Source: Ylistrum balloti
Taxonomy: Eukaryota
DNA length: 64,000 nt
Reading direction: 5' to 3'
Assembly: GCF_031769215.1 (NCBI RefSeq)
Contig: NW_026782138.1
Location: 434,001 to 498,000 of the forward strand
Below the pieces are notes generated by a model. The model was not told the DNA's origin and did not search any database. It saw nothing but the letters and a program-made list of their open reading frames with translations. Position numbers and translations under genes: made by a program. Shown here in pieces: positions 9,990-47,800 of this stretch; position 1 is the stretch's first letter; every line of letters starts with the position of its first letter.

Positions 9990-10305
9990 TAGTGTAATAC
10001 TAATATTTGATCACGTGGGAATAGTAGTGTAATAAATTATCAGATCACGTGAGATTAGTGGTGTAATACTAATATTTGATCATGTGAGATTAGTAGTGTA
10101 ATACCGTTATTTGATCACGTGAGATTAACAGTGTAATAATTATCAGATCACGTGAGATTAGTGGTGTAATACTACTATTTGATCACGTGAGATTAGTAGT
10201 GTAATACCATTATTTGATCACGTGAAATTAGCAGTGTAATAAATTATCAAATAACGTGAGATTAGTGGTGTAATAAATCCATACGACATTATAGATGTAA
10301 TCACG
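9990..10305. repeat. ~34-bp minisatellite (about 8-9 units), GATCACGTGAGATTAGTRGTGTAATACTAATATTT-like
   Basis: Directly visible tandem units. Confidence 0.9.
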
Positions 10306-14200: not shown

Positions 14201-14494
14201 AAATTCATTTTCATGATCACATTTCATATAAAAAATATCTTTGGGAAAAGTTCTTGCCTATATATGGCTGTAGATAACATGGATATGAAACCTGATTAAA
14301 ATCAATATTTAATGTACATGTATTCCAGTTTAAAAAGAAAAAAATGTTTTTCACGTTCCAATTGACCACGAAATTCACGTAATCTCCAATAACCACGGTG
14401 TTTTTACCACGTACGTTACGCATTGCACTAGTAACCCTTGACTCTTATATCTCGATAGTTTCCCATTAAACTTCCATGAGATGATTTTAGAATT

Positions 14495-16175: not shown

Positions 16176-16384
16176 AGGACTAGTAACATTGAAGATTTTA
16201 CCGTGATGATTTATTTATTGTATCTGTAAGTTACGTACCACGATAATTTATTTATCATAACAAAAACCGTGACACTTCTACCAACATATTTTATGTTTTC
16301 TATAGTAACCACGATAACACCAATATACTTAGTTAAAAGTAATGCTTTTATATGCATCATATATATACGTATGTATTTATTAAC

Positions 16385-17890
16385 ATGCGAATGTTACTCT
16401 CCTTTTTGGTATTTACATACGAATGTTACTCTCCCTCTTGTTATTTACACGTGAATGTTACTTTCCTTCTTGGTATTTACACATGAATGTTACTCCCCTT
16501 CTTGGTATTTACATGAGAATGTTACTCTCCTTCTTGGTATTTACACGTGACTATTAGTGACTTTTGTTTTTAGTGTTTTCTAGTAAATGGCGAATGTAGA
16601 CTTCAGTATTTAAACGTAGTAATAAATGTTATTTTCCTTTTAAATATTAATATGAGAAAGTTACTCTCATTTTTTATATTAACACCAGAATGGGTCGTTC
16701 TTAGTATTGACACGTGAATGTTACTCTCCTTTTTGTTATTTACACATAAATGTTACTCTCCTTTTTGGTATTTACACGTGAATGTTACTCTCCTTTTTGG
16801 TATTTACACGTGAACGTTACTCTCCTTTTTGGTATTTGCACGTGTTACTCTCCTTTTTGTTAACGCGTAATGTTACTATCCTTTTTGGTATTTACACGTG
16901 AATGTTAATCTCCTTTTTGGTATTTGCACGTCATTGTTACTACCCATTTTGGTATTTCCACGTGAATGTTACTCTCCTTTTGGTATTTACACGTGAATGT
17001 TACTATCCTTTTTTATTTCCTCTCCTTCCTTTTTGGTATTTACACGTGAATGTTACTCTCCTTTTGGTATTTTTTTGGTATTTACACGTGAATGTTACTT
17101 TTTGGTATTTACACGTGAATGTTATCTCCTTTTTGCACGTCATTGTTACTCCTTTGTATTTACTACCTCATTTTGGTATTTACACGTGAATGTTACTATC
17201 CTTTTTGGTATTTCCACGTGAATGTAACTCTCCTTTTTGGTATTTACACGTGAATGTTACTATCCTTTTTGGTATTTACACGTGAATGTTACTCTCCTTT
17301 TGGTATTTACACGTGAATGTTACTCTCCTTTTTGTTATTTACGCGTAATGTTACTATCCTTTTTGGTATTTACACGTGAATGTTAATCTCCTTTTTGGTA
17401 TTTGCACGTCATTGTTACTACCCATTTTGGTATTTCCACGTGAATGTTACTCTCCTTTTGGTATTTACACGTGAATGTTACTATCCTTTTTGGTATTTCC
17501 ACGTGAATGTAACTCTCCTTTTTGGTATTTACACGTGAATGTTACTATCCTTTTTGGTATTTACACGTGAATGTTACTCTCCTTTTGGTATTTACACGTG
17601 AATGTTACTCTCCTTTTTGTTATTTACACGTAAATGTTACTATCCTTTTTGGTATTTACACGTGAATGTTAATCTCCTTTTTGGTATTTGCACGTCATTG
17701 TTACTACCCATTTTGGTATTTCCACGTGAATGTTACTCTCCTTTTGGTATTTACACGTGAATGTTACTATCCTTTTTGGTATTTCCACGTGAATGTAACT
17801 CTCCTTTTTGGTATTTACACGTGAATGTTACTATCCTTTTTGGTATTTACACGTGAATGTTACTCTCCTTTTTTGGTATTTCCATGTGAA
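16385..17890. repeat. 32-33-bp minisatellite (about 40 units), GGTATTTACACGTGAATGTTACTCTCCTTTTT
   Basis: Directly visible; interrupted at about 16555-16710; variant blocks recur. Confidence 0.97.
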
Positions 17891-18184
17891 TGGTGACTGC
17901 CATTTTAAGTATTCACGTGTGATCTTTTGCTCTCTTTTTCTATAATTAACATTCAAACAATATATGGTTATCAATGAAATCGACATGTTCTTTTACCTTG
18001 ACATTGTCATACTTACTGTAGTAGTCATTCATTTCGGAAGGTATGAACGTTGATTTTATTTTCATCGTTTTCACCCTTACAACTTAGATACAAACGTGAA
18101 TCATTCCAAAGTTGAAATCGTGTGGCCTTGACCGCATATCAGTGATAATGTTCTCCTGTTTTAGGAGCGTGTTGGAGAGGAAAG

Positions 18185-18436
18185 ATGCCAAGTATGATGT
18201 CATGTCCGGGATATCCGAAATGTAGGAAAATATATCTATACGCCCAGGGACTGAAGGCGCACATTCCCGCGTGCAGACATGCGCAGTGTAAACGTGTGGT
18301 GAAGAGGCGGGAAGCTATAGAGACAATGCTGACAATTATTCAGTTCAGTGAGGACCGTCACAGGGGTAACATTACCGTGGCCCGGAAAAGTTTACCAGAT
18401 TTCACCCCTATCCGACCGGTCTATACAAGGATATAG
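18185..18436 (+). CDS. Putative small protein (83 aa) with one C2HC zinc finger
   Basis: CPGYPKCRKIYLYAQGLKAHIPAC fits C-x5-C-x3-Y-x5-L-x2-H-x3-C. The ORF is GC-richer than its flanks, has a TTTTAG acceptor at 18164, and AATAAA at about 19032 and 19125. No homolog recognised. Confidence 0.4.
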   Translation: MPSMMSCPGYPKCRKIYLYAQGLKAHIPACRHAQCKRVVKRREAIETMLTIIQFSEDRHRGNITVARKSLPDFTPIRPVYTRI

Positions 18437-19249
18437 CGATAGGTCGATACTATCATTTATAGTATGATGAGAGTGTTGTCGCTAAATTTTAAGTCTTTTC
18501 AAAATACATGTTAAAATCAAGTCTGCTCTGGAAAATTAATTACTTAATTGAAATCGACTTTCGTAAAGTCTTTCTCAAGGGAACGCTTGTTATGTCAAAG
18601 TGTGACATTTAAAGTGGTCCTGAGAATTGCATGAGCAGTGTACATGGTGTATTTGCAGGTTGTGTTGTGGCATGCAATGAGTGCATACCTGTTGATAATT
18701 GTCCCTTAAATACAGCGATTCAGACTGAGGGATTCCAAATTACATAGGTGTGCTATGTTGTGTACTATATATAATTCATGCGTGTAAAAGCGAACTTAAT
18801 GCATTTTAAAAATTTACCACGTTTCACATTGATCTATCGACACGTACACACACTAATCCTCACAGACAAACTCTCCGAAATAGCTTTACCACCAAATCGT
18901 ACAGTGGAATATAGCTGTGAGAAATGTGCTATCCTTTTCTGTAAAATTTCGATAATTTCATTGTAGTCACTCATGTTTATTCATTACAAAACAATCTACA
19001 TATTAAATATAGGTTATTCTTGTTTCTCAGGAATAAATTTTGTTCCGTTATGACTTTCTTGTGTTTTTTTTATGTAATTAAGTGATGATATTTGAAATAT
19101 AAGCTGCATGCACGAATATTCCTAAATAAATAAGAGACAACGGAACCGTAATTCGTACTTCGTTATCAGGTCAGGTGTACTGCGACACATTTATTGATAC
19201 AGGTTTTTGTTACACGTTGATAGATACAAGTGTACTAATCCTCGTCTCC

Positions 19250-21480
19250 GTCAGTAGATACAGGTGTAATGTAACTTGTCAGTAGATACAGGTGTAATGT
19301 AACTTGTCAGTAGATACAGGTGTAATGTAACTTGTCAGTAGATACAGGTGTAATGTAACTTGTCTGTAGATACAGGTGTAATGTAACTTGTCAGTAGATA
19401 CAGGTGTAATGTAACTTGTCTGTAGATACAGGTGTAATGTAACTTGTCTGTAGATACAGGTGTAATGTAACTTGTCAGTAGATACAGGTGTAATGTAACT
19501 TGTCAGTAGATACAGGTGTAATGTAACTTGTCAGTAGATACAAGTGTAATGTAACTTGTCAGTAGATACAGGTGTAATGTAACTAGTTAGTAGATACAGG
19601 TGTAATGTAACTTGTCAGTAGATACAGGTGTAATGTAACTTGTCAGTAGATACAGGTGTAATGTAACTTGTCAGTAGATACAGGTGCAATGTAACTTGTC
19701 AGTAGATACATGTGTAATGTAACTTGTCAGTAGATACAAATGTAATGTAACTTGTCTGTAGATATAGGTGTAATGTAACTTGTCTGTAAATACAGGTGTA
19801 ATGTGACTTGTCAGTAGATAAGGTGTAATGTAACTTGTCAGTAGATACAGGTGTAATGTAACTTGTCAGTAGATACATGTGTAATGTAACTTGTCAGTAG
19901 ATACAGGTGTAATGTAACTTGTCAGTAGATACAGGTGTAATGTAACTTGTCTGTAGATACAGGTGTAATGTAACTTGTTAGTAGATACAGGTGTAATGTA
20001 ACTTGTCAGTAGATACAGGTGTATTGCAACTTGTCTTTAGATACAGGTGTAATGTAACTTGTCAGTAGATACATGTGTAATGTAGCCTGTCAGTTGATAC
20101 AGGTGTAATGTAACTTGTCAGTAGATACAGGTATATGTAACTCGTCAGTAGATACAGGTGTAATGTAACTTGTTTTTAGATACAGGTGTAATGTAGCCTG
20201 TCAGTAGATACAGGTGTATTGTAACTTGTCTGTAGATACAGGTGTAATGTAACTTGTCAGTAGATACAGGTGTAATGTAACTTGTCAGTAGATACATGTG
20301 TAATGTAGCCTGTCAGTAGATACAGGTGTAATATAACTCGTCAGTAGATACAGGTGTAATGTAACTTGTCAGTAGATACAGGTGTATTGTAACTTGTCTA
20401 TAGATACAGGTGTAATGTAACTTGCCAGTAGATACAGGTGTAATGTAACTTGTCTGTAGGTACAGGTGTAATGTAACTTGTCAGTAGATACATGTGTAAT
20501 GTAGCCTGTCAGTAGATACAGGTGTAATGTAACTCGTCAGTAAATACAGGTGTAATGTAACTTGTTTTTAGATACAGGTGTAATATACCCTGTTAGTAGA
20601 TACAGGTGTAATGTAACTTGTCTATAGATACAGGTGTAATGTAGCTTGTCAGTAGATACAGGTGTAATGTAACTCGTCAGTAGATACAGGTGTAATGTAA
20701 CTTGTTTTTAGATACAGGTGTAATGTAGCCTTTATACAGGTGTAATGTAACTTGTCAGTAGATACAGGTGTAATGTAGCCTGTCAGTAGATACAGGTGTA
20801 ATGTAACTTGTCTTTAGATACAGGTGTAATGTAGCCTATTACTAGATACAGGTGTAATGTAACTTGTCAGTAGATACAGGTGTATTGTAACTTGTCTGTA
20901 ATACAGGTGTAATGTAACTTGCCAGTAGATACAGGTGTAATGTAACTTGTCTGTAGATACAGGTGTAATGTAACTTGTCAGTAGATACATGTGTAATGTA
21001 GCCTGTCAGTAGATACAGGTGTAATGTAACTCGTCAGTAAATACAGGTGTAATGTAACTTGTTTTTAGATACAGGTGTAATATAGCCTGTTAGTAGATAC
21101 AGGTGTAATGTAACTTGTCTATAGATACAGGTGTAATGTAGCCTGTCAGTAGATACAGGTGTAATGTAACTTGTCAATAGATACAGGTGTAATGTAACTT
21201 GTTAGTAGATACAAGTGTCATAGAACTTGTCTTTAGATACAGGTGTAATGTAACTTGTCAGTAGATACAGGTGTAATTTAGCCTGTCAGTAGATACAGGT
21301 GTAATGTAGCACGTCTGTAGAAACAGGTGTAATGTAACTTGTCTGTAGATACAGGTGTAATGCAACTTGTCAGTAGATACAGGTGTAATTTAGCCTGTCA
21401 GTAGATACAGGTGTAATGTAGCACGTCTGTAGAAACAGGTGTAATGTAACTTGTTAGTAGATACAAGTTTGTTGTAACTT
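19250..21480. repeat. 28-bp minisatellite (about 80 units), GTCAGTAGATACAGGTGTAATGTAACTT
   Basis: Directly visible tandem units. Confidence 0.97.
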
Positions 21481-21714
21481 ATTGACAGAAACGTTATATA
21501 AACCCTCTGTAGATACAGGTGTATTCTGACTCAACTCGTCTTTGTCTGCAGATACAGATGTTACGTCACTCGACTGTAAACAAAGGTGTGTTGTAACTCG
21601 CCTATATACAGAGGTGTACCGAAACTCATCTGTAAATAAGAGTGTACTATGACTCGGTTGTAGATACAGATGTACTTTTCCTCGTCAATCGATACAGGGT
21701 ATGTATCGTGACTC

Positions 21715-22735
21715 ATCTGTAGATACAGGTGAATCGTGACTCGTCTGTAGATACAGGGTGAATCGTGACTCGTCTGTAGTTACAGGGTAAATCGTGACTC
21801 GTCTGTAGATACAGGGTGAATCGTGACTCGTTTGTAGATACAGGGTGAATCGTGACTCGTCTGTAGATACAGGGTGAATTGTTACTCGTCTGTAGATACA
21901 GAGTGAATCGTGACTCGTCTGTTGATACAGGGTGAATTGTGACTCGTCTGTAGATACAGGGTGAATCGTGACTCGTTTGTAGATACAGGGTGAATTGTGA
22001 CTCGTCTGTAGATACAGGGTGAATTGTGACTCGTTTGTAGATACAGAGTGAATCGTGACTCGTCTGTTGATACAGGGTGAATCGTGACTCGTTTGTAGAT
22101 ACAGGGTGAATTGTGACTCGTCTGTAGATACAGGGTGAATCGTGACTCGTTTGTAGATACAGGGTGAATTGTGACTCGTCTGTAGATACAGGGTGAATCG
22201 TGACTCGTTTGTAGATACAGGGTGAATTGTGACTCGTCTGTAGATACAGGGTGAATCGTGACTCGTCTGTAGATACAGAGTGAATCGTGACTCGTCTGTT
22301 GATACAGGGTGAATCGTGACTCGTTTGTAGATACAGGGTGAATTGTGACTCGTCTGTAGATACAGGGTGAATCGTGACTCGTTTGTAGATACAGGGTGAA
22401 TTGTGACTCGTCTGTAGATACAGGGTGAATCGTGACTCGTTTGTAGATACAGGGTGAATTGTGACTCGTTTGTAGATACAGGGTGAATCGTGACTCGTCT
22501 GTTGATACAGGGTGAATCGTGACTCGTCTGTAGATACAGAGTGAATCGTGACTCGTCTGTTGATACAGGGTGAATCGTGACTCGTTTGTAGATACAGGGT
22601 GAATTGTGACTCGTCTGTAGATACAGGGTGAATCGTGACTCGTTTGTAGATACAGGGTGAATTGTGACTCGTCTGTAGATACAGGGTGAATCGCGACTCG
22701 TTTGTAGATACAGGGTGAATTGTGACTAGTCTGTA
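21715..22735. repeat. 29-bp minisatellite (about 35 units), GTCTGTAGATACAGGGTGAATCGTGACTC
   Basis: Directly visible; joined to the 28-bp array by degenerate intermediate units at 21480-21715. Confidence 0.97.
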
Positions 22736-25100
22736 GAAAAAAGTGTACTGTAACTAATCAGTGTATACAGGAATATTGTAAATTCTTGTTAATAGATACT
22801 GGTGCAATGAAAGGCCAATAGTAGAGATGTGATCTTTGTGTACAGAAATACAAGTACACTGTAACTGGTCTTTTTATACACCTGGCTGTCCACGCGGTGA
22901 TCCATCCACTAACAAAATCACCATATATACCTCATTTTCTATATTCCTGTGTCTTGTGATCTCCGCTGGATAAGAGAAACTTCATGTTTAACTGCATGGG
23001 CTTGAGACTGGGGATAAACGCTGTTAGACGTAAGGAATTAGTGCTTTATATGGTGTTAATAGACATGTTGTCATATACTTCACTGTAATGACAATGTGCA
23101 AAATCTGGGTTTTAATTTTTCGGTTGTATCAATGTACACCACAACAGTTACAATATACTTGTGTTAAGGGTCAGTTCCGACATTAATGAAAGTTTTCATT
23201 AAAAAAAGTTTCACAGCAAATTATGCTGTAATTACCTAGAGTAATACTTTACATCAAGGAAAGAAATCATAACAACATAATCTTCATTTTTTTATTATTA
23301 AAATCAATGATACAAATTAATCCTCATTCAAAGACTTGAATGAAAAAAATTAGTGTTTTGTTGTAGAAAAAAGCATGATATATACATGTATATGTACATG
23401 ATGTAAATAACATGATATCTATAAAAAGTTAAGATTTATAATGACTAGCCCTACACTGATCAACCCCATTATTGTCATTATCAATTGAAGGATAACAAAA
23501 TTCTATCTCTCAAAATCAAGACAAAAATTTACCAGTTTTTTTTTTTTTTGCAGCAAAATTAATTCCAAAACAATTGTAAAAATATATGGTACAGTAAAAC
23601 TTGTATCCCAACAAAAAGTAAAAAAAAAGTTGACGGGACAAAAAAATGGCTTATTAGAAAAAAAAACTTTTCATTCAATAAATTATTTATTATAAATGTA
23701 CTATGATTTCCGGGTAATTTCAAGGTAGATAACTCTAGAAGTAGTAATGGGCTATCACAATTTAGACTGCATGTAGACACGACTCCACAACACACTTTCT
23801 CAGCACTCTTATGATGATTTGTTATTTTCAGTAATAAACATTTATCACATACTCACTATATCAATACAATTTTAGTATGTAATATATCCCTCCCTCCTCA
23901 ACAGAAACCTTTCAGAACAATCTGTAGTCTATTTCTTCTCAAACTCATTCACATGACAGGACCATACCAGAGTAAATAAGACACTGATTAAATTTATTAA
24001 CGCTCCTATATCCACGTTTTAAGTTCTATGTAAATTATGCCCACTGAATGCCTAATCCTGATATTTACAGCAAAGCTTCCCCATGATGCAATGTAAAGCA
24101 GTGATACCAAAATGAGAATGTCTTTATTTTTAACTACAGAGCAATATGTAATCTCATATTCAATACATGTTCCAATAGTGTTGTTACTGATGGTATCAAC
24201 TCTGTAAAATTATGAATATATTTAAGTGTCACATGTTCTTAATATCGCTGAACGAACTGGTATAAGAAAAGGTATCAACACGCCAAGAGCTTTATCTTTT
24301 AAAAGAAAAAGTTTTAATTCCTAATTCTTAAATCCATAAATTTATATACAAAAAAACATCTCTTTTTCATTCTAATTATTTCCCCCCGTGATATTCTATC
24401 TGATAATAATCTTCCCATTAATTCTTAATCTTGAATTGTGAGAATAGATAATCTTGATATTTCCTCTCTGAAACTGTCCTATTTCAAATAAAATATCTAA
24501 TGATGAAATGATAAATGAACGATGGAGTTATTGCTTTGAGCTATGATTTTACAAAAATATATACATACATTTTACCTATTTACAATATATACAACTTTTT
24601 ACAATTGGATTAGACATATTGCAATCAAGATACAAAATATCACATTTGCATAGAAAATTTGTATCCTAGTTTAAAATATACTCGATACATGTACCATTCT
24701 CTCACATGCATGCACACACACTCTCTTCTTTTAACATCCACTATGATTTAGGATTAAGTGTTGACAGAATGCATGTTTTGTACACAAAAAGTTCTCTTAT
24801 GAATTTGTATAATTTGCATTTCCATCCTTACATTTAACAAGCTTTCAGTTATTTGTGTAACATCAAACTTCTGATATATTTTGAAAGTATTTCTAAAAGA
24901 TAGTTTGGATTTTGGTAATCATTTAAAAAGAGAACTCTACATGAAAAGAAAAAGCACTTCTGATGAAAATACCATAAAGATACATATTTCAGTGTAAAGA
25001 AGATCTGTTTTCAGTATGGCACTTTTACATGGACTCATTTTGTAGTGCTGTAGAAATGTTCCTGAATTGAAAGAAGCCTGTAGTATTGTCGAATCAGCAT

Positions 25101-28100
25101 CTACCGTCGCTTTAGGAAGAAGAAGGCGAGTACAGATCCTGTAACTAAGGCCCAGTTGGCAACAATGGAAGCAGCACCAGCTATACGACACTTCAGAGTC
25201 CCGAACCTAAAATACAGAAACAATGATTTATAATGGCCATGATCCTGTTAAGTTTGAGAACGATACACTGCATTCAAGAATAATTGTTGACTTTGAATGG
25301 TTTTATGCTGAATATCATCACAAGTGTGACAGAATGTCAATTTTTAAAACAAATGGCAGGTGCTTTCATCTGTTCATACGCTACAGTATGATTATCTACT
25401 GAAATACAATACATGTTTAAGCGAGGGGAAAAAATGGTATCTTCTAGTACAAAATTTGAAGTTGTTCAATTAACCACAGCATAATTTTAAAATCACCCTA
25501 TTATTCATACAAAGCTTCTGAAATCATACCAAATAGGTAGAGACTTACTGGTATGTAATGGCCTACACACTAACAACACTAAGTATAACATGACCCTAAT
25601 CAACCTTGACACAAAAATATTTACTTCCCAGATATTCTAAAGGAGAACAATATATCTCACTGTGAAAGTTCTACATTGATGGCATTATAATCATTACATC
25701 AATTACAGCCATTTATATATTTTTATCACAACTTCCATGTTTTAGCATTTCTACCCCCCAAAATAATTACCTGTTCGGTTTTCCTGCCAATTTCTTTGAA
25801 TACTCTTCCTCCATAGTTTGACCATCATAGAACCAGGCAAGGTCATTAAATGGATATTCGTATCCTTGACGACATTCACATTTGTAGGAACCAGTTTGGA
25901 ATCTTTTCCCAGGAAGGGGAATACACTACAATGATTTTTGCGAAAAAGAATATATTATACATTTCAAATTCTAAAAATATACAATTCATCCAAATTGCAC
26001 ACAAAATTTTACATTTTTTTGTTTTCCTCTGGACTTTTTATCACAATGAATAGGCATTTTTAAAAATGAATCAGAATATTCACAGCCAAATCCACCAAAC
26101 AAGCCTTTGTTAAAAAAAAAAAAAAAACAAGAAACATTAAAACAAACCAACAACAAACCTTTCAATGCTTATTCAATCTCAATGAAAGTTTATGTTCAAA
26201 ACACTTTTTTGTCCCAAGTATGAAAACACCTCCACCTCAAAAGCTTAGTGATGAGCGCTCCGGCATTCATCTTTGCCACCAGAGAATACTCACAAGCAAT
26301 GTAAGGTGAGTATTCCGCCAGTGCCAAGGACGACTGACCAGAAATCTGTTTCAGATGACATCCTGACAAGACTCCATCGACTTGTAAATGAATGCCTTTA
26401 TACCACGATGAATAAGTATGTCCCAGTTCAAAGTTAACCCAATACCAAACCATTATCATCACTGAAACCAGCAAGCTTTGTGATTCTCTACTTCACACCA
26501 AGACAAAAAAACATATCCGAGTTAAAAGTTAACCCGAGATCAGACCACTTTAATCACTGAAACCAGTAAGGTATGCAGTACTAAATGTATGACTGAATTT
26601 AAGTCAATGACAACTGCCTTCAAGGAAACCAAGAGACATTGACCATGTATGTTCATTTGTTTCCTCCTGCCAATCAGATCCTTTCACCAGATCAAGACAC
26701 TCTTTCACCAACAAATCACAGCAAAATGATACTTGATATCAAACAATCCTTTTCAGGGTAAACAGCTATATATAGCATTCAATATTATAAACCAACAGGC
26801 TGGAAGGTGTGGACAAGCATCAGATAAACACAAAAATCTAACCACACTGAAATTTATAACCACACTTAAACTTACAAATCAAGACATTCCATGATAAAGC
26901 ATAAGAAATAATGAAACACAAATAAAAATTATGAAAAGGATATGTTGTCCATATCAGAGAGAATGATTTTCTTTTTGTTTTATATTTTACTTACGTAAGT
27001 TGATTTGAAGTCGCACTTGGCTGTATTTTTGAAAGCGTTGGCTACATAGAAGTCCTGTGGACACTGATTTATGTCTAGATAATCCAACTTGACATCAACT
27101 TTAACTACTCCTCTGCAAAATTAAATTTACAATTAGTATTTTTTACAGTATATGATTTATTAAAAAGTCACTTATTTATTTTATTATATCCCATCTATCT
27201 GTAGAGAGTCTATCCATTTACACTGGACCTCTAACAAATCCTTCAAAGTTTTCTTTCGTACATAAGATATGAAATGTGCTACATAAGAACTAACATTCCC
27301 TTGACATTCATTCTACTCGACACCCATCTTAAGTGCGATTTTACAAAATTCTACAATGAAAAGCAGTACACGAGTTGAAAGTTTTTTTACCATTATTAGC
27401 AAAGATTTACTTTTGATTATTTGAAATTGTCTGACATGATTTGCTCATCAAATATTCAATAAATTCAAAGATATTGTAACAATGCTTTTTTCATTAACAT
27501 CAAAAGTTATTTCATTTTGACAATTCAAATTCTTACTTGAATTCAAGCATGGTTTTCAATTCATTAAATCCAAAGAAAGGAACCACGTAAGTAACCACCC
27601 AGTCCATGATGCGGTCATCACACTTGAACTCAGGCCTCAGCCATTCACCATGTTCATACTTTGGAGCATAGTACTGGATGGGATAGTACTCAAATCTGAC
27701 CAGACTAGTACCATTCACATCTGACCTCACCATGGGTTTGGCTGTGTACTTGACAAGACTATGGAAATTGGTCTGCCATCTTGCCTTTACAGTTCTGTAC
27801 CAGACCTCGTCTGTGTAGAAGTTAGAGTATCCAGCAGAGTCTACAGCAAAAAACTCATCTAAACCATCACCAGTCTTGGTTTGCTTCCTCCATGAGTATG
27901 GGCCAAAGAACTCTCTCACTATTCCATTGTTGTATCGTGGATCAGTATTATTTATTGGTGGAGACATGCGGAATTTGTAGCGCTCAAAGAAAACACCACT
28001 GCCAAGGATTCTGAAGTCTGCCATGACATTGGCAAGAACTTCTCCAAACAAATGTGTTTCATTCAGACGTCGGTCACCAGTCATACTACCAAAATTCTCG

Positions 28101-31100
28101 TACTCATCGACATTCTGCAAGAAGTCCGACAGGAAGTGTGCTAAACGAACTGCTGTACGTCCTTGTGCCTCAAATTGTTTCTCAACACCATAGGCAACAT
28201 CTCCTGGGAGGAAAAGTTCATGTGGCATTTTGGTTTTACAGTTTGCAGCATTAGTTTGAGCTTTTCTTAACAAAATCTTGTCCATTTTAACTCTCTTTTC
28301 CGCATCAAACAGATCCCGTTTATTCCTAATTTTTTTACTTTGTCCATCATATCTCGGAACATGTCGACGATTTCTGAGTTTTTCTTTCATCTTATCCTTT
28401 GGAACAGATCTTCTGGCTACTAATTTTGCTCTAGGACTCTGACCCGATGTAATGATCTTAAATAAGGTGGATTTCTTAGTTATTAGTGTTGATCTCTTTC
28501 TTCTCCTTTGCACAAATGTGGGCATTTCATTCGGAATCACCTGAAGCTCTGTAATTAAGACAAAATGGTCCTTTTAGTGTGTAACTCTCTCTGAATATTG
28601 TCATTATTAGTTGTAACAGATGAATTTAGAAACTTAAAATATTAACACAGAATGAAACTCAAAATTGTACCTTTTCGAATGTAGAAGCAGTTTCATCATA
28701 TCATTGTAATCTGCATCACAAAGTCAGATAAAAAATGTCTTCCAACAAGAATGTCCTTACCAATTCAATTATTTACATTTTATTATAAACACTAATTGGT
28801 AACCTCCCAAGGACAGACATGGTAACTGCTTATCACTATGTACCCCCAGAGCATGACAGGGATTAACATTAAAAGGAATTTGTAATCGGACTATGTTAAC
28901 TATAAAGATCTTTATAAGATTCTTAAATTTCTTCACTAATTTTTGTATTTAAGACAAAAAAATCACAACCATTCCAGTTATAACAAGTTGACAGTATCAA
29001 TGCTATTTCTTATTAAAACTAAACAGCAATATTTTTTTACCTTCCACAGGTAGGCAATCAAAGTTATTCATGTATTCATCTTCTGTCGCGATCTCAATCT
29101 CGTCTCCCAGGAAAGGCCCACCATGCCACCAGGGAAAGTAGTAGCCAGGTCGACACACACACTGGTAGCCACCCCGTCGGAATCCATAACCATTCAACGG
29201 CTCACACTGAAATAGAAAATGGTTGTTTTGATATACAAGTAAAAATGTGGCATACAATGATAAAATTGTACTTGTCACAACTGAAACATTACAACATAAC
29301 ATTAGTGTTAAGTTTTTCCAATTTAAATGTCTTTTTTTAAACATTCTTAAACAGTGAACGAATACATTAAATACCTAATCTATCTTCTTGGCTTGAAACA
29401 AGTCTTGTAATAATTTATAATATGTACTGGTTAGAAATATGTTTAATCATGTCTGTTTCTAAACTTTCAGTGAAAAATCAGGATTATGTACATGAGTAGA
29501 CTGATTTTTTTAAAATCTAAATTGATTACCTCTCTCTTGATCTGCCCAGATATAGCAAGATATATATGGATGTCATGTGACCATATATAGGAATTCAGAT
29601 AATATCTTTAGTGAAATTACAAAATATAGCAATGTAGTACTGCAACATATTTTATGTAAAAGGAACTGAGGATGAAGCGATGGAAATTGCTCTACATGCC
29701 TTGACCAGCAACTTCTTGATCCAAGAGTGTTCTACCTATACCAGGGTTCTGTAAATTTTGTGTCAACATATTGCATGTTCAATGTTAACTTATTTATTCA
29801 TGGAACAATTCAGAACACTTGATCGGACAAAAACATACTGATGAGTCATGTTTAATTCGGTCTCACGATGTTAATGTTATTTCATCATACATAGCTAGCA
29901 TGTTATTTTCCACAATATAACTGTACTCCTGAGTATTTTTACTAGCCTTACACAAGATTGCATATTAAGGAAGTGTCAGGATGAAGCAAATTCCATTTCT
30001 TAAAAGACGGGAATCATAAACAGCCACACCCTTGTTCCGGATATAAACGCATGTTTTAAAGACTTGTCGTTGGATAATAGTATTTACAAATTAAATACAC
30101 GTATCTTTATTCGCCAGCAAATCGTCATTATGTGTCACTTTATGTTAATACACAAGATTTAGAAATATGTAATGCCTAACATTGTACTAGAGAAACCAGT
30201 GCTCACGGTGAACATCCTGTTCTTCCTCTCATCTCAAGCCTCTGCCAATATAGGCTTGTCGAAGAGTTTACACGCACTGTCGGTATAATTTAGCATTAGC
30301 AAACAAAAGAAACATCTAAATTTTGGTCTTAAAACGATTCAAGGCAATGTTTCATGACAACACACGTTTTCCACGATGTTCATCTCACCTTCTGTCCAAA
30401 CTATATGACCACGCTGCATTTGGCGGGTGTTCAGCGTCGTCACGAATAATATGATCGTGGTCACCTAAACGTTTACTCAGCTAGGCACTTCTATTGGGGC
30501 CCAAAACAGGGGAATCATGCGGATTGTCTCTATCATATCCCTTTCATACACCATTACCTTTTTATCCCACTTAAACTAATAGGGTACTGATGCGGTTTAC
30601 TAGACAATTTAAATTCACAATTTAAGTTGTCGCTATTCATATTTCACTCACATCTTAACTTGCATTTGATCAAATCAATATTGGTTCATTCAGATAAATG
30701 CAAAGCTAATATTGATGCGTCAAAGTATAGTAAAACAAGTACGACATTAATTCTGTCAAAGGACATAGGACACGGTTATATCATGATTTTTTTTTCTAGA
30801 ACACAAATAAAACGTTTCATAGAATTGTTTAGAAAGGAAAGCGAGTGCTCATAAATGAAATCAAGAATAAAAATTTCTAGTAAATTGTTAAAACTGAGAC
30901 TGTCAGACCCATACAAGAATTAGGCGCAAATATGTCTCGCTTCGTTGGTTAGATTATTATTTTTCTGCGAAAAATGTAAAACAAACAAAAATTCATAAAA
31001 CCCACCTGCAAAATAAATGTCCCTCAGTCTAATCAATAACCAAAGATATGCTGTTGTCATGATTCAATCATTATATATCAATTTTTTTTCTAATATAAAT

Positions 31101-34100
31101 TCTTCAATTATCAAAATTCACCATATTTACCCCAAAAATACCTCTCTTGCCAAGGAGAGAAAGGAAAGCCTGTCTGATGATATTTCATATTACTTGTTAC
31201 AATATGAATATAAACTAAATCTAATATAGAATAAAAAGGAAGCTAGAAAGATTTTGCTATTTCTCATATCCTTATCTTTTTTTTATGAATAAATATATCA
31301 ACTAATATAATTTACTTGACAAGTTCAGATGTATTATTGAAGTTTACACGTCTATTCTACAATGTCACTATGTTTACTTAATAAGAAACTGAGTTAAACT
31401 CAAAATCAAAATCCTAGCATTCCTAATTTTCAGAGTCGTTGGACCGTGAAGTAACGTATTTTATTATAAGGGATGAGTTTGTTGAGGTGCCCACTCAAAT
31501 CTAACAAAAAAAAAACCGGATCTAAACCCAAAACGTTAAAGTGAAATACTGACAAAGACGCCCGAGATGAAACGCATTAGTCTCGCTTCCACGTCTTTTT
31601 TCGCGGGCGAGACAAGAATCAATATTAACGTAACATGCGCACATAGCTGAAAACATTCAAAATCCGGTACAGGTGAGATATTTCGACACAGAAACTGTCT
31701 CACAATTAATTTTCCTTATGGTTTTCAGACACACTTAAAATATTGTTCCATAACATTCACACCAGGCGCCGACATCTTTATCAGTATAATAAAACCAACA
31801 CACACATTTTAAAAGTTCTGGATACGCTAGTAGCAGGGAGCTGTATTTCGATCGTAACGCCACAACTTCATTCCGTTACTGAGAATATGGACACGAGCAG
31901 CGATGCATCAAGTGCATATACGGGTAAAGAAAAATGAACCATAATCCGATGACTTTTGCTTGGACGTGACAACTCACCAGTTAATAAAAGATCCATCTCA
32001 CGTGATACATTGTATCATAAGGAAATGAATCTCCATACCACCACCGCCCAAAACGTACATTTCTGTAGCGAATACCTGTTCTGTGTTGACAGAACGTGCC
32101 CGTCAGGCCGACCAAGCAGCATGATATTGATATATAAATTAAACCCTAATGGTGTTGGTAATGGTCAACCGCGGTTGTTACGCATACGTAGTTGCCATGG
32201 CAATAACAATTTTCCTCCATACATTTAGATAAACACACCGATATGATATCGAAGAATGATGGTGGTTTCCATAATGACTTTCTATAAACACAATCCTAAA
32301 CACAATATATACTGTTACTGCAACAGTTCATGTCTTTGTTGACCCACTGTATCACAAAGGTACACGCGTTCATCAGGAATTAATTCCGGATAATCCTAAT
32401 ATTTGTAGAAGTTGTGTGTACTGTTACGTCTGATATTAACTTGTAATGAAGCCGTTGGGCACCGCTGTATTTATTAGTTTTCGCTTTGTCTTCAGTTCAT
32501 TAATTATAGATTTGTGACTATACGACGATAATTTACGGTCTATTCTGGTTGGACAATGCCTTGCCTGCCACGCACGGCCGTGGTGCGACCAGTCGAACAC
32601 TTGGTCGATAATACAGTGGTCTCTCATTCATCATAAACCCCGAGGTCGTCTGCCATACTGTATCGGCACGGAATAGGTTGTTGATAGTAATCAACATAGC
32701 CCATAAACCTCATGCAACACTATGGCAACCAACATACCTCGGCAACACGCTAACACCAGTCCATGTCCTGATTGACATACATATATTAATGATGAAATCT
32801 CGAATGGTTATTGGACGCTTTTTTTCGTATATCCACTATATCATAAGTTGAAAAGGTAGCCCAGTATATATGATCTAATTTTCAAATTTCAAATTAAGAT
32901 TATTAGATCTGGCGAAACCAACTCATCCTTGTGTGCGTGGGGGACATCATCAAGATGGTGGCGACGAAGCAAAGTGTAAAGCACCGTCATCGGAAGAAGT
33001 TATTATCTTTATTTCCTCCAAATATGAAGATTTGCAAAGACAACTATATAAACAGTAATAAATTACATAAATTTACACGCGTAAAAATATCACAATGGAC
33101 GCCATACCTTTACGATGTTATACATTTATAATCAGTTTGTGTCTTTCGGTAAAGGAGCTGTTTCTATGCAAATTCAAAATATTGAGTGTCCCCTCCGTTG
33201 AATATTCAACATGTACATGACTCGGTACAATTTCATCATTAATCTTCATATAATTATAACACACGTTATTTGGAATTTTAGTTATGTCAGTCGCCCTATT
33301 TGTCGTCGTGAACAATAAGTTTATATACTTGCCTATCTTTGTTAATCAAACTCGATACTAACAGTGTAACGATTCCGATGTTAAGATAAATGCATTCGAT
33401 GACAGTACTCAGCTGTTTTTTTCTTACACGACGTCATATTGATATGTCCCATTCGGACAATTTACACGACAGAGTTATTGAGCAAAGCACTACAAAGTTA
33501 TATAAATAACATTCATATCTCACAGAGTTACTTCCCTTCGTTTCAACCCATCAACTGTTATGGCGATATCAATAAGTTCGACAGCTTTGTATCGATAATG
33601 TTATACGATATGATGAAGTCCAACCAATGACAATATTGACCAAGTTGAAACACAGGGGCATGTTACAATGATTCTGGGAGCGTGGACTTGTGTAGAATAT
33701 CTAGGGGAGTATTATTGTACATGCTCCTTTGCCGAATGCAGGGATGTCGATACATAACGTAACGCACTTCTTGTATTGTATGTGTCAATTCAATGGACAA
33801 TTTCAGTCCATACGTTAATATGTCATTGAGCCGCCAGAGACCGCATGTCTCCGGTACGTTAGCGTGTTATTGGTTAGAGAACAACTAATCCGCAGGGTGA
33901 TTTTATGCAATCATACTAAAGTAACGTAGATCAAATAATTGATTATGACTGCATAGCAATTAAGGCAGTAAAATACAACAGGATTTTTAAAAATAAACAA
34001 TGCGGTTCCCACTTACCTGAAAACCGACAAAAATGAAAAACACCCGCCGGAAGCAAGTTATTCAACCGATGATGTTATGGAGATATAATTTAACATTAAC

Positions 34101-37100
34101 TGGCAGAGCTTTCCTACTTATTTTGTGGATTTTTTTAATGGTGGTCCCTATATTGCATTTCCTGATTGTCTCAACATACACAAGTATTTTTCACCGTTGT
34201 CCAAACAGGTCTACGTTGTCAGCTGTCCTAGTTAGCCATACGATCTACGATCTTAAGATTTTCCTCTACATGTCCTTTTGGAATAGTTGTTTTAAAAACT
34301 GTTAATCGAACAGGTAAAATACTCTATGAATTTCCCAAACCTACACAATATAAACTTTCTCTTTTTCGTCATTTTATCGATTCCTAAATATCAAGTATCT
34401 TACTTCAGTTTGTTGGTTTTATTTGACTCGTAACGAACATGTGTAAGACTTCATGAATTTACCGATTCCTATATATAAGTAGTTTAACTCTGTTCACGTT
34501 TACTAAACTCATAACGTACCACATTTCATTCATCTCTTGTAGCTTCCAATTTAGTTACTTTCAAGATTACTGACGCCGTCAAACGACATCATATTTCACA
34601 AGTAATTTTACCGATACCACACTTAAGTATCAAGTACTTAAGTATTTAAGCCCAAGTACTCTATCTGTAGTAACTTACAAAAACCATTTCTTAATGTAAA
34701 ACCATCCATATTTAAAGTGTTTGCTATTGGATAACAACAACGTTGTGGCCGTGAGTATGTACAAGCCATAAAAAAACTAGACAGAGACTTCATTGTACCT
34801 GCTGTCTACATTGCGTGATCGTAAGAGGCGGTTAATCTTGGAATCTTTAAAGTATACTTTCCTATTTCTAATGACATTTTCCTTTTTAATCTCTCTCATG
34901 ACACTATTTCACATTTGCCCTTTCTCATGAATGTCCGTCCTGGTGAATAAGGCTATGCGTTATCCTCCCAAGCCGTGACATGCCAAAACGAAAATGGTAC
35001 TTCGCACTTTTTGCTTGAAGATCACCTTTGAGCGGTTACATATCACAAAACCAATACTGATATATATGAAAAACGAATACAGCTCGTTGATAGCGTGAAA
35101 ACTAGTATACATGTAGTGTCACCATTAAAAAAGTGTATGATGGTGACATTGTTGTAATGTTTTTTGCCAAAATAGATCATGTACTCGTTGTACCTCAGGT
35201 GATATAGAGGACGAATTTCACTTTATCCTAAAATGTCCTTTTTACCAAAATCTGAGACGTAAATAAATCAAACAATTCTGTTACAGAAGTCCAAATGTTT
35301 TTAAGTTTACGATATTACTGAGCACCAATAATGTAAAAGAATTATGTAATTTTGGGAAATATTTATATCAGGCCTCAAGGAAACGCATAGAATTTAGTGA
35401 TTGATAGAGCTAATTGTACACTACAGTATCATTGTAAGCTTACTCTCCATTTAACCTAATTTGTATAACATTCTTTCATATTTGTACCACATTATGTAAT
35501 TATGTCTATATTATTTAACCTATGAGTCGGATGGCTCACGGAAAAATAAAATGATTGAATGAATGAGCTAGTACAATCAGAAGTTTAATTGGATTTGTGA
35601 CGTCCTAGTAATACAATAGGAATAATGTCATGTGACCAAAAATGAACGGGAACAGTAGTCATACAATTGGTCTCGACTCTAACATAGTGCAGTAAACTTT
35701 TGTTCGTAAACATAACTAATGGAATGAAATATTGCTGACAAATGTGTTGGAGTGCACGTGGTGGAAATGTTTAGCCAAGGTAGTCGCTATATTATTTAAC
35801 ATATACTGTTTCCCCCTGCAAGGGGATATTATGCATGCACATGCTCCCTTCTCTGTCGTCAAAGGTGGTACTATAATGAGGGACAAGGAATGCTTACCAT
35901 GGTGGTAGGTTTACACCTAGCGGTATCTTTGAAGTAGTTAGGGTCGGGATTTCCTTCACTCTTGGGGCAGGGGTTGAAGTCGATCCTCTCAAACTCTATA
36001 TCCTGGGTCACCACCGCCACAAACCTGCAAGACAAGGTGTCAGAATAATGTATACCACAACATTTATGTTTATAAAACGACATTGCCTTACAAAAATAAG
36101 TGTCAGGACAAAACTTCGGAGGGTAACAGGCAGATATTAACTAGTACTTCAGTAATAAATGCGGGGCTTAGATATAAGTTTGTTTTTCGGTTTGTACTTA
36201 TGACTTTACTCTTGGATCAGAACTTTGATTTAGAGAAAATATCTCAAATAAAATTGGACAAATTTTGACGAATTCTGACAAAAAAATCAGTAGATATGGA
36301 ATCTTTACACGTGTTTGAAGTAGATATCTGATACTAGTAAATTTACCTAGGTCTTCGGAGATGGGTCCAGTTGGAGTATCTAGGCATATATTCGACTACT
36401 GGTGAATGAGCGCTGACGATCCACCTGTTGGATCGGCCACAGTCGAAGTACGGCATGGTCCATTCGACCGGGAGGGACACATCTCTGTCTGATTGTCCGG
36501 GTTGGGGAGGCCCGAAAAAATCGATTCCCTCGAACTCCTTATGAGTAAATTGTTTTGTGGCGTTGGAAAACTTCACGTTCACAAAATAGGTAAACTTCCG
36601 GAGAGAGTCTTGACTCTTGTCGTTATCCGGGAGCCATGCAGAGTACCATGGGGCGGCTTTGTAAGCATCACTTGTGTAATTTTTCATCGTTCCAGCTCCA
36701 TAGTCATGAATGTCCACAGTATTGTTAGTAGGCTCTCGTAACCAATTCGTCGGTTCATTATAATCATCCGTTCTCCACGCGCGAGGTCCAAACAGGGGAA
36801 GTGTTTTGTTGAATTCCACGCCATTGTAGAGGTACCATTGAGGGTAATTACAATGATTGTCAAAGTACATAGCAGAACCGTTTATAAACCCTTGACTTCC
36901 AGTTACATCGGCGGTGGCGGCCATATAGAGATACTGAAGACCTGGCTGGTTCATAAAATCCTCTGATCTGTTCTGTCTTTGGTATATGAAACTGTAGAAA
37001 AAGGCTCGATTGAGAGCCATGTTGTGCAGGTGTAGTAGTTGGGATCTATTTGAATATATTACGGTACTCAGTAACATATTGTACCGTGGTAACTGTGAAA

Positions 37101-37302
37101 CAGTTTCCATGGGAAGCCGGAGCTTCTCTTTGGGTTTAGACCTACAGTTATCGGCAGTAACAGAGGACATTCTGTCCATAATTTCATCGAATCGGTCCTC
37201 TGCCAACCAGTGGAAAACGCCCGATTGTGAGACACTTCCGCACCATGACGCGTAAAGAGTCAGAGTTAGTCCAACGAATATGATATGCATATACAAACCC
37301 AT
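25101..37302 (-). CDS. Uncharacterised 879-aa protein with two GPR158/GPR179-like extracellular (Cache + EGF-like) modules and a C-terminal anchor, no 7TM. Exons: 37302-36347, 36024-35898, 29206-29041, 28548-27537, 27112-26995, 25925-25771, 25206-25101
   Basis: Seven GT-AG exons total 2640 nt in one frame, with an N-terminal hydrophobic signal peptide. Motifs WTMPYFDC..WIVS, EFKGVVKVDVKLDYLDINQC, FKNTAKC..CIPLPGKRFQTGSYKCECRQGY and GYGFRRGGYQCVCRPGYYFP parallel the recalled GPR158 ectodomain (WSPPYLEC, EFRGVMKVDINLQKVDIDQC, FSGTHKC..CMPIKGLGFVLGAYECICKAGF). The protein ends ..GAASIVANWALVTGSVLAFFFLKRR*. The gene structure is firmer than the family assignment. Confidence 0.92.
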
Positions 37303-44837: not shown

Positions 44838-47800
44838 ATGACTTCACCAAACTCTGAATCTAACCCACTGGACATGTCTGGTAAGTATATATCAAAGATA
44901 TTCATTTTGGAAGGAAAGTTATGATACATTGCTAATGATTTCAATTGATCAAAAAGAGTAAATGGGGTATAGTAAAAATTGTTGAAGCATCGTAAAAACA
45001 GTATTGTGAACATGTACATACTAAGCTTTACTCTTGCTTTTAGTTGTGTGTACCATAATTAGCTAAATTTAATGGATTTGGGCATGCTTTGCATAGTTAA
45101 ATATAGCTATTAAAGTGGAATAATACTAAAATAGTGTAATCAGGACTTCTTATCCTCTCTGTATTAGATTTTAGTCTATATGATGAGATGACCATTAAAT
45201 GAAAGTCTGGTCACCTCATGTCCAAGATACAGGAATATAAATCTATGCTGTGTATTTAGTGAAATGAATTTTGCCACCCTTGTCACATGTCTTCATGATT
45301 TAACATTGCATGCATGTGTTTTGACTCCATTTTCAAGGGAAGTAAGGTTTTATTCCCTGATGTCTGAGGAAACCCAAGCTGAGTCTGTAAACTTGTATAT
45401 AAGATATGGGTATGATGTAGAGACCTGAACCCAAACAATAGAAATTGGATGATAGAATAGCCAATCATTTTACATCTACTTGTTGTGTATGGTCAGTGTA
45501 GTCATACATATAAATGTATTAGTTTCCATCATGACTCTACATTGTGGTGTAGGTGTTGTCATTTCCAGATAACCACCTCCTCTGGACTTTGCTTTCCAAA
45601 AGCATAATCACCCATCTACTGACATATATATATAGTTTGTTATAAATAACATGTAAAACTTTCTATTTTAGCCCCAGGAGGGCAGATTTCTGCCTCATTG
45701 ACTCTTCCACAGGGAATGGGGCTCCAGACTATGCCGATAATGTTGTCAGTCAGCCTTCCTGAAAAGGACAAAGGAGATAACAAAATGGGTATATAAATAC
45801 ATATTTTTTGACACTTGTAAAAGCTCTTTTTTAATATGTCCAACTTATAGACACTTGATGAAAGGAATTTTTCAGTTACCCTTGACAGGAAATCATCATT
45901 TTTTCCCGGTGTGAGATTTACTTTTCTCACCCCAGGTTTGAGACCGCTATACATGCTCTTTGCACATTCTGAAAACGGCTTAAGTGACGTTACCTGAAAG
46001 TGGAACTACTTTTATGTAGTCACAATTACTCTAGTTGGTCTGCTACTGAAGTCTTGTATTATCCTCAAAACTGAAAATCCTGTGTTATCAAGATTGAAAT
46101 TTATTTATATCAAACATAAATATGTTAAAATAAGAGTATTTTTGATTTGGTGTCTTATTGTCAAGTATAACAGAATTAGTTTTTGTGTAAGATTAAATCA
46201 CAATGCTTTAAGTGTATTGAGCTGTGAACCTTGTCACTATTCATTAGCCATCCACATGTTTTTGTTTGAAGTTCATCTTACACTGGGACATGGAAAACAG
46301 TGTAAAAAGAAAATAATCATTCACTCCCTTTAGGATGAGATAGAGGGATTCCAACCCTAGGGGGGAGATTATGAAGCTATCAAACACTCAACAAATCTTG
46401 TGTTTGACAACTTAATAATCTTCTCCCTCGGGCGGAGATTTCCTAAAGGGGGTGAACGATTCTATTATTCTCTTCTGATAGAAAGTCCTATCATTAAAGG
46501 TGTTTGGTTGATGAGTTGTATATGTGTAAACCTTAACTTGAATGCAGTTGTAAATTTAATTCTTTTTTATATTTCTATCTATCAGACCATAAATTTCAAT
46601 GTGGAAAAAACCCCACTTCAACACTTTACTAAAAAATTTTGCTTATGCAGTACAGCAGTTGACAAATTCTCAAGTTGTACCAGAGGCACATACACATTGC
46701 TGTATTTTACTATTTCATTTCATGTATTGTTTGGAGAAATATGTGGTTGTTGTATCATATTTTTGTAACATCATTTAGGTGTTTTGCCCCCTGTACTGCA
46801 GTTAATCCAGCAGAGTGGATTACAAACGCTATCGCAGATCTTTCCACAAGCTGCACCACCTCTGACTAATTCCTCTCAAGCCACGTCTATCCAGGATTAT
46901 ACTACACCCAGTCCAGCCCATCCTAATGTGGAGACAGACTTGTCAGAAGCCTCACTAAAACCACCAGCCAAACCTGCATTTGATCTGTCATCCTTCCTCA
47001 AACTACAAAATCCAAATGATTTAGTGTCAATTCAGAATCGAATATCCCTTGCTAACAATTCGCTCAATAGCCTTGCTAATGTAGTACAAGAGTCAACCAA
47101 TTCCCAAGTGTTACCACAGACACAGACTCTGACCAGTGCCACTGAACAGGGCAGTGATAACAGACAGAATGATGTTGTTCATCCGTCATCTTCACTTTCC
47201 TCCTCTGAGGCACCTGCAGTTCTACAAAACCTGTCTGTACATGATGCAATAGCAGTTCATCTTGGTGGTAATGAGTTTACTAGGCCTGACCTCATAAGCC
47301 CACATCTGGAAGCCCTAGTGTCTAATGCTACATTCATCCAGCAGTGTGGCAATCAGGACCTGGCCAGTGGTCAGTATGCAACCAATGCAGCCCCTCAACT
47401 CACCATTCATCAGTCAGCTGATGCCCTTCAGACGCATGGACAACATGCAGGAGAACCTCTGATGTCTGTAGGTGATCAGTGCCAAATGCCTTCTGATTTA
47501 CAAAGCTCAACATTGCAGTCCAACATTCAGAACCAGATGTTGTGTTCAAGCACAGCTCTGGGCCATCAAACAGATGGGACAGAGTTGTCCTCTCAACATG
47601 TAGAGACATCACAGTTGACACAGAACCACATGGAGGACATTAGTCTCAACACTCAGCAGAAGTGTAATGATGTAGCCATTGGAAATGAGATGACAGTAGG
47701 TAAATATCTGATGAAGTTCCTGGTGATTCCCTGAAAATTACTTCAGAGTGATAGCATTTAAGATTCTTTTTTTTTTTTTTTAACTTTTAATATATTTGTG

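Follow-up and report, generated by a model that had tools for sequence, protein, structure and literature searches.

The gene and its transcript support

The gene LOC132550395 lies on the minus strand of a 64,000-nucleotide stretch of the genome of the scallop Ylistrum balloti (contig NW_026782138.1, positions 434,001 to 498,000; hereafter the window, by whose own numbering coordinates are given), and it encodes a protein in which two ectodomains of the GPR158/179 type follow one another in a single chain that has neither a seven-transmembrane (7TM) region nor an intracellular domain. Open reading frames (ORFs) and splice sites defined seven open segments on this strand, separated exclusively by GT-AG introns, with a coding sequence that runs from 37302 to 25101, exactly the ends given in a preliminary description of the locus (25101-37302). 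When joined, the exons form a coding sequence of 2640 nucleotides with one terminal stop codon (TAG, 25103-25101) and a product of 879 amino acids. This hand-built model agreed at 879/879 residues with XP_060070440.1, the Ylistrum balloti RefSeq entry named 'uncharacterized protein LOC132550395', and orthologs that are also 879 residues long and share 93-95% identity are present in Pecten maximus, Mizuhopecten yessoensis, and Argopecten irradians.

Transcript support comes from a sister genus, in the form of an RNA-derived Argopecten irradians contig of 2885 nucleotides assembled from a public sequencing run. The contig is intronless and encodes a complete, 94%-identical ortholog that ends at the same stop and is followed by 117 nucleotides of 3' untranslated region (UTR). 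Its alignment to the window fell into seven blocks whose ends coincide with the modelled exon ends, and this match provides cDNA-type support for all of the junctions and for the stop codon, which the preliminary description had placed at 25101 while calling for cDNA to confirm it. LOC132550395 is an intact, expressed Ylistrum balloti gene.

The exons follow the domains of the protein closely. Exon 1 (36347-37302), whose assignment draws on an Argopecten mRNA block at 37430-36347 as well as on the ORF, splice sites, Pfam, and a structural match, encodes residues 1-319 and ends in a phase-2 donor; it contains the signal peptide (37231-37302, residues 1-24, a hydrophobic N-terminus), an N-terminal helix with Cys53, Cache domain 1, and the start of the first copy of the Pfam domain PF22572. 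The final Cache strand and the beginning of cysteine-rich region 1 are encoded by exon 2 (35898-36024, residues 319-361; mRNA block 36027-35898), and the EGF-like cysteine-rich part of unit 1, up to Cys412, by exon 3 (29041-29206, residues 362-417; mRNA block 29207-29041), which matches PF22572 positions 70-96 and gives weak Pfam matches to hEGF/EGF_CA. Exon 4 (27537-28548, residues 417-754) supplies the basic linker, the N-terminal helix of unit 2 with Cys520, and Cache domain 2; exon 5 (26995-27112, residues 754-793) the final Cache strand and the beginning of cysteine-rich region 2; and exon 6 (25771-25925, residues 794-845) the EGF-like part of unit 2. Exon 7 (25101-25206, residues 845-879 plus the stop; mRNA block 25208-25099) encodes a conserved Lys-Cys851-Arg, a cluster of small residues (A854-S858), a 14-residue apolar core (W863-L876), and then KRR.

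Domain architecture and the end of the chain

The product enters the secretory pathway and consists, in order, of a signal peptide, GPR158/179-type ectodomain 1, an 82-residue basic linker, ectodomain 2, and a short hydrophobic C-terminus. In each ectodomain unit, one Cache domain precedes an EGF-like cysteine-rich region, and each unit separately matched PF22572 (GPR158_179_EC), scoring 87.9 and 88.6 bits where the cutoff is 28.1 bits. A phmmer search of PDB sequences with the Argopecten ortholog matched only GPR158 and GPR179, with residues 715-818 aligning to residues 261-361 of GPR158 at an E-value of 3e-13, and weak matches to MCP-like_PDC_1 were present in Pfam. Every element of the order proposed in the preliminary description (signal peptide, Cache plus EGF-like region, basic linker, Cache plus EGF-like region, stop) is therefore present, with two PF22572 copies. 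The signal peptide and the C-terminal tail are the only hydrophobic stretches in the protein, and the chain stops three residues past the second of these, leaving no intracellular region that could recruit RGS7/G-beta-5. In Pfam searches, 7tm_3 was found neither in XP_060070440.1 nor in 11 relatives, and the VWA domain characteristic of alpha2-delta and CACHD1 was not found either.

The C-terminal 26 residues (residues 854-879, 25104-25181) are probably a signal for attachment of a glycosylphosphatidylinositol (GPI) anchor, with a candidate omega site in the sequence AGAAS, a short spacer, and a short hydrophobic tail. Family statistics point in this direction. Among full-length relatives that have all of the anchor cysteines, 216/231 end 25-34 residues past the equivalent of Cys851. 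The tail carries a conserved motif, C-R-[LIV]-A-G-A-[SA]-[SGA], in which the invariant Lys-Cys-Arg is followed by Ala at +3 in 183/231 members, Gly at +4 in 167/231, Ala at +5 in 197/231, and Ser, Ala, or Gly at +6 and +7. Thereafter comes a short, often polar stretch and then a hydrophobic stretch that stops a median of three residues before the C-terminus, with a strictly apolar core whose most frequent length is 14 residues and which is shorter than 19 residues in 186/220 members. This core forms the very C-terminus in 17/220 members, and 52/220 lack a basic residue among their final six positions. A layout of omega region, spacer, and short hydrophobic end appears to be of the GPI type, and a membrane-spanning helix would fit poorly in most members. 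The single hydrophobic tail of the preliminary description thus exists, as one C-terminal hydrophobic stretch followed by a stop, but it is more likely a GPI signal than a transmembrane anchor.

Two other accounts of the C-terminal end were considered. In one, the gene model is an artefact and the locus encodes a true GPR158-type G protein-coupled receptor (GPCR) with 7TM exons that were overlooked or are located further downstream; a weak CG|GTAGAT motif that overlaps the stop codon could in principle serve as a splice donor. We regard this account as extremely improbable. The overlapping donor was rejected because the Argopecten mRNA reads through it and continues past the stop into the 3' UTR, and the 17 kb of DNA 3' of the stop consist largely of minisatellites, the rest of the 25 kb on this side containing repeats and another gene, with no minus-strand stop-to-stop segment from 25100 to 1, the start of the window, that resembles a 7TM exon or other receptor sequence. 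Moreover, the next gene, which is PDHA-like, lies on the opposite strand, and relatives of 726-1010 residues from many phyla lack 7tm_3 and mostly end 25-34 residues past the same cysteine, a common end point seen in more than 200 species. The absence of a 7TM region and of any signalling domain, as claimed in the preliminary description, is supported by Pfam, by the downstream DNA, and by the mRNA stop alike. The other account keeps the same architecture but ends it in a type I single-pass helix with a three-residue cytoplasmic stub; such a helix could be what remains of the first transmembrane helix (TM1) of a GPR158-like ancestral receptor, and the small-residue motif could mediate helix-helix packing. 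The sequence of R852, 24 uncharged residues, and KRR agrees with the positive-inside rule, the AlphaFold2 model shows residues 856-878 as a helix, and a stretch of 24-26 residues without K, R, D, E, or P occurs in 84/220 members; in addition, an Ala-rich upper part of TM1 makes a dimer contact in GPR179 (PMC11437087). In many members, however, the segment past Cys-Arg is polar, charged, or proline-containing, which leaves only ~14 apolar residues, and both the 17/220 members that end at the apolar core and the 52/220 that lack a terminal basic residue fit poorly with such a helix. The strongly conserved A-G-A-S would suit the needs of an omega site, and there is a precedent in alpha2-delta, which was reportedly first taken for a transmembrane protein and later shown to be GPI-anchored. 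On balance, we consider the membrane-spanning helix doubtful and favor the GPI signal.

Predicted structure, internal duplication, and the linker

An AlphaFold2 model of the Argopecten ortholog, built with 82 family sequences, had a mean predicted local distance difference test score (pLDDT) of 88.2 and a predicted template modelling score (pTM) of 0.86, with disorder confined to the linker (pLDDT 42-52). The preliminary description had named AlphaFold and Foldseek among the checks on its Cache assignment, and this check upheld it: the top Foldseek matches of the model were GPR179 and GPR158, followed by bacterial Cache sensor domains. In VIA-align comparisons, unit 1 (residues 81-347) superimposed on the bacterial Cache domain 3lic with a Z-score of 13.6 and a root-mean-square deviation (rmsd) of 2.6 Å over 153 residues, and unit 2 (residues 500-855) matched GPR179 with a Z-score of 10.2 over 243 residues and GPR158 with a Z-score of 8.9 over 220 residues. 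Structural matches of the GPR158/179 type included 8irj, 8d1b, 7ewl, and 7ewp. Many ligand-bound Cache domains scored Z 8-11 against both units, and alpha2-delta chains scored ~Z 7.

The two units share 32% identity and carry 8+8 cysteines at corresponding positions, all 16 columns being at least 97% conserved in the family. They also share intron positions and phases: the intron between exons 4 and 5 has the same position and phase as that between exons 1 and 2 (phase 2, before the last Cache strand), and the acceptor of exon 6, like that of exon 3, precedes the equivalent cysteine in equal phase (phase 0, before the first EGF-like cysteine). The sequence identity, the matching cysteines, and the common introns mark the tandem as the product of an internal duplication.

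An AlphaFold2 model of the ortholog from D. simulans likewise had a pTM of 0.86, but its linker was ordered (pLDDT 82-94) and formed three short helices. Because a pTM of 0.86 at 807 and 879 residues needs confident placement of the modules relative to each other, the two modules are predicted to pack as one rigid body in both scallop and fly. Two long helices of the Cache domain build the dimer interface of the receptors (PMC11437087). Their counterparts here rank among the best-conserved parts of both units, a pattern that is compatible with, and no proof of, the idea that the single chain packs like the receptor dimer.

The linker (28304-28548, residues 417-498) contains 25 K+R versus 7 D+E, is disordered in the scallop model, and is the least conserved region of the family (0.12). 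The scallop protein has three RX[KR]R motifs, at residues 432-435, 475-478, and 491-494, every one of them inside the linker. The first forms part of a candidate furin-type site, RRRKR (28493-28507, residues 431-435), that is followed by Ser; the second, RNRR (28364-28375, residues 475-478), is conserved in the four scallops only; and the third, RNKR (28316-28327, residues 491-494), is followed by Asp and lies ~30 residues before Cys520. Family-wide, the density of such motifs is 0.97 per 100 residues in the linker versus 0.009 elsewhere, a ~110-fold enrichment. Their placement is regular as well: in most molluscs of clade A (the slower-evolving mollusc copy, see below) a motif occurs 18-20 residues past the last unit-1 cysteine (Cys412 here), and in 73/95 motif-bearing members the last motif occurs 30-34 residues before the first unit-2 cysteine (Cys520 here). 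At least one motif is present in nearly all spiralians and in the nematomorph.

These R-X-[KR]-R sequences lie in an accessible, disordered region of a secretory protein (pLDDT <55), as is characteristic of convertase substrates, and convertase processing of the linker is likely in the scallop and spiralian proteins. By contrast, no furin-type motif was found in the arthropod orthologs, whose linkers span only 61-67 residues between the flanking cysteines; because arthropod linkers are short, ordered, and free of motifs, processing would not be universal in the family. The parallel that the preliminary description had drawn with alpha2-delta is strengthened by the GPI-like pattern of the tail and by the confinement of the motifs to the linker, at positions conserved among spiralians; processing is not a family-wide trait. 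We also looked for an inter-chain disulfide of the alpha2-delta kind that co-varies with cleavage, and the data did not support one, as the sole extra cysteine, Cys151, has no partner column; with no inter-module cysteine pair evident, the cleaved chains would associate non-covalently. Cys151 (window ~36850-36852, minus strand), a 17th cysteine, lies in module 1. It is conserved in roughly half of the spiralian members with long linkers and hardly ever in arthropods, and may be either unpaired or engaged in an intermolecular bond.

Family, comparison with known systems, and possible function

Relatives with two units, mostly of 800-1000 residues, are found in molluscs, annelids, a brachiopod, nemerteans, flatworms, rotifers, and an orthonectid, and also in a tardigrade, a nematomorph, crustaceans, a horseshoe crab, springtails, and many insect orders. 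Many Drosophila species have an ortholog of 807-810 residues (for example, D. simulans GD20036), the species shown in the cluster listing being others than D. melanogaster. This survey bears out the supposition of the preliminary description that uncharacterised relatives exist in other protostomes. No nematode, deuterostome, or cnidarian member was present among the matches listed; the sole vertebrate match, to 12 stretches of a 1674-residue fish protein, was rejected as spurious because that protein is of the Ig V-set repeat type. Features common to the tandem family are all present in the scallop protein: a signal peptide, two PF22572 units, 8+8 cysteines, and a K-C-R-x-A-G-A-S tail that ends 25-34 residues past the last cysteine.

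A tree of 66 members follows the species tree and shows one lineage-specific duplication in molluscs, with the scallop gene in the slower-evolving copy, clade A. The scallop protein is 58-65% identical end to end to clade-A proteins of non-scallop molluscs; its identity to the fly protein is about 41%, and that between fly and mollusc proteins about 40%. Clustering at 90% identity places Drosophila and tephritid orthologs together, and identity between the D. simulans and Anastrepha proteins is 88%. This is a near single-copy gene that has been retained across protostomes under very strong constraint. The listed records are named uncharacterized, hypothetical, or 'GPR158/179 extracellular domain-containing'. 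Full-text literature searches returned no paper on the tandem family, which has no published name, and no functional description was found in the literature searched, in line with the preliminary description. A few records are mislabelled 'G-protein coupled receptor 158' or 'Fras1 related extracellular matrix protein', and Haliotis rufescens LOC124140029 (625 residues) has one PF22572 unit and may be a single-module variant or a partial model.

GPR158 and GPR179 have a homologous ectodomain, and the Foldseek matches to them, over 220-254 aligned residues, span both the Cache domain and the cysteine-rich region. Unlike these receptors, the scallop protein has no 7TM region and no intracellular tail, so that RGS7/G-beta-5 has no docking site; it places two ectodomains in one chain where the receptor is a homodimer of two chains; and it is probably lipid-anchored. 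Each scallop unit has 8 conserved cysteines, compared with 12 in the GPR179 ectodomain (PMC11437087). Like alpha2-delta and CACHD1, the scallop protein is wholly extracellular and contains multiple Cache domains, and the Cache modules of alpha2-delta from Cav structures align with it at ~Z 7. Those two proteins are wholly extracellular multi-Cache auxiliary subunits, and alpha2-delta is cleaved into two chains and GPI-anchored. The scallop protein differs from them in having no VWA/MIDAS in Pfam and in having GPR158-type Cache modules, with a separate EGF-like region for each; it differs from alpha2-delta further in the placement of the modules (rmsd ~22 Å when both are aligned together) and in having no evident inter-chain disulfide. 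The Cache sensors of bacterial and archaeal chemoreceptors and histidine kinases share the same fold, to which the scallop protein adds an EGF-like region, the tandem arrangement, and a predicted lipid anchor in place of flanking transmembrane helices. GFR-alpha, CNTFR-alpha, and TRAIL-R3 are lipid-anchored, ligand-binding ectodomains that need a transmembrane partner or serve as a sink; they resemble the scallop protein in logic only, as their folds are unrelated.

The ligand pocket was compared at one position, that of GPR158 E271, which, together with R173 and D307, we take to be a residue of the glycine pocket. In the phmmer alignment, E271 corresponds to the residue that precedes the conserved Cache cysteine. 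Unit 1 has Asp287 at this position, invariant in 231/231 members, and the cysteine equivalent to GPR158 C272 is also invariant in unit 1. Unit 2 has Lys725 in the scallop protein and Asp in 151/231 family members, and the Lys at this position is specific to some lineages.

Taken as a whole, these results are best explained, with what we judge to be about an even chance of being right, by a GPI-anchored two-module protein that is cleavable in spiralians and has a co-receptor or auxiliary role. Judging from the sequence patterns, the mature protein would be held by lipid on the outer leaflet of the membrane, and in scallops and other spiralians furin-like convertases would cut on both sides of the basic linker, yielding two chains that would stay associated non-covalently. 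Without a cytoplasmic part the protein cannot signal alone. It would most likely serve as a binding module tethered to the membrane, in the role of co-receptor or auxiliary subunit: the strongly conserved module 1 would bind a small molecule or some conserved partner outside the cell, and the information would be passed in cis to a transmembrane partner. This is how alpha2-delta works for calcium channels and GFR-alpha for RET, and our best guess is a lipid-anchored ligand-binding co-receptor. In a more specific version, which we think unlikely, the protein would be an ancient protostome-wide sensor, a lipid-anchored single-chain Cache pseudo-dimer whose invariant module 1 binds a small amino-acid-like molecule and which gates or tunes an ion channel or a GPR158-type receptor, such as Drosophila Smog.

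Several points weigh against the cleavable, GPI-anchored co-receptor. The GPI assignment came from in-house heuristic rules applied to family statistics, and the scallop tail by itself, with R852, 24 uncharged and mostly apolar or small residues, and KRR, can also be read as a single-pass helix. Cleavage is predicted from motifs only, and because arthropod orthologs have no cleavage sites, it cannot be essential to the core function. Rigid packing was deduced from pTM alone. Lastly, with Lys rather than an acidic residue at the position of E271, presumed to line the pocket, module 2 of the scallop protein may not bind an amino acid.

Two other functions were weighed against that of a co-receptor. 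The protein might organise adhesion or matrix, binding an extracellular protein or glycan and positioning a partner at cell contacts such as the synapse, with no sensing of small molecules. Many GPI-anchored proteins are adhesion or organiser molecules, GPR158 binds heparan-sulfate proteoglycans, and the basic linker could bind sulfated glycans before its excision. In addition, loops of the GPR179 Cache domain bind pikachurin (PMC11437087), and 8d1b was among the best structural matches. The linker, however, is the least conserved part of the family and in arthropods is short and not strongly basic, and we hold an organiser to be an improbable choice, on a par with the protostome-wide sensor. 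Slightly less probable again is a decoy or ligand buffer that competes with the 7TM GPR158-type receptors of the same animal, in which case spiralian module 1 might be shed in soluble form after convertase cleavage. A receptor-homologous ectodomain without a signalling part, cleavage motifs between modules that have no evident inter-module disulfide, and the existence of GPI-anchored receptor decoys such as TRAIL-R3 are consistent with this role. But the relationship of the modules to the receptor ectodomain is a distant one, and no GPR158/179-type receptor was present among the best 150 matches of module 1; very strong, lineage-independent conservation and one-to-one orthology across protostomes suggest that the protein has a partner of its own; and the predicted rigid packing speaks against module 1 simply leaving. 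Of these functions, that of a lipid-anchored ligand-binding co-receptor remains the one we prefer.

GPR158 was recently shown to be a metabotropic glycine receptor (mGlyR), and its Cache ectodomain is a drug target. The present gene indicates that an ectodomain of this type also exists in free-standing, duplicated, and probably lipid-anchored form. As the gene is already in RefSeq and the domain in Pfam, the sequence itself is not new, but the literature searched contains no account of an architecture that combines tandem ectodomains, no 7TM region, a probable GPI anchor, and convertase sites restricted to certain lineages. The cleavable linker of spiralians versus the short, structured linker of arthropods constitutes a natural experiment on whether processing matters, and because there is a Drosophila ortholog, function is accessible to standard genetics. 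If the protein were indeed a pseudo-dimeric sensor, it would establish a new class of auxiliary subunit that senses ligands, and the idea could be tested directly in flies. For annotation, such 7TM-less genes should not be counted as GPCRs, as counts based on names would be inflated.

The remainder of the window holds several other features. The intergenic DNA 3' of the gene (9990-22755) consists largely of chained minisatellites with periods of 35, 29, 32, and 28/29 bp, of which the array at 19250-22755 has up to 124 copies; their translations give long, stop-free pseudo-ORFs that are easily taken for exons. Beyond them, exons of a gene for a pyruvate dehydrogenase E1-alpha-like protein lie on the plus strand at 6015-6302 and 7435-7677, convergent with the double-Cache gene, and reverse-transcriptase-like ORF fragments on the minus strand at 307-1164 probably derive from a decayed retrotransposon of the non-LTR (long terminal repeat) class. 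On the other side of LOC132550395, a PRDM-like gene on the plus strand (51151-52839) encodes a SET-like piece and a series of C2H2 zinc fingers, and a preceding 316-residue ORF rich in Ser, Thr, and Gln (46784-47734, plus strand) may contribute an upstream exon to it. Two near-identical ORFs of 110-116 residues lie ~3.9 kb apart on the plus strand, at 59163-59495 and 63097-63447.

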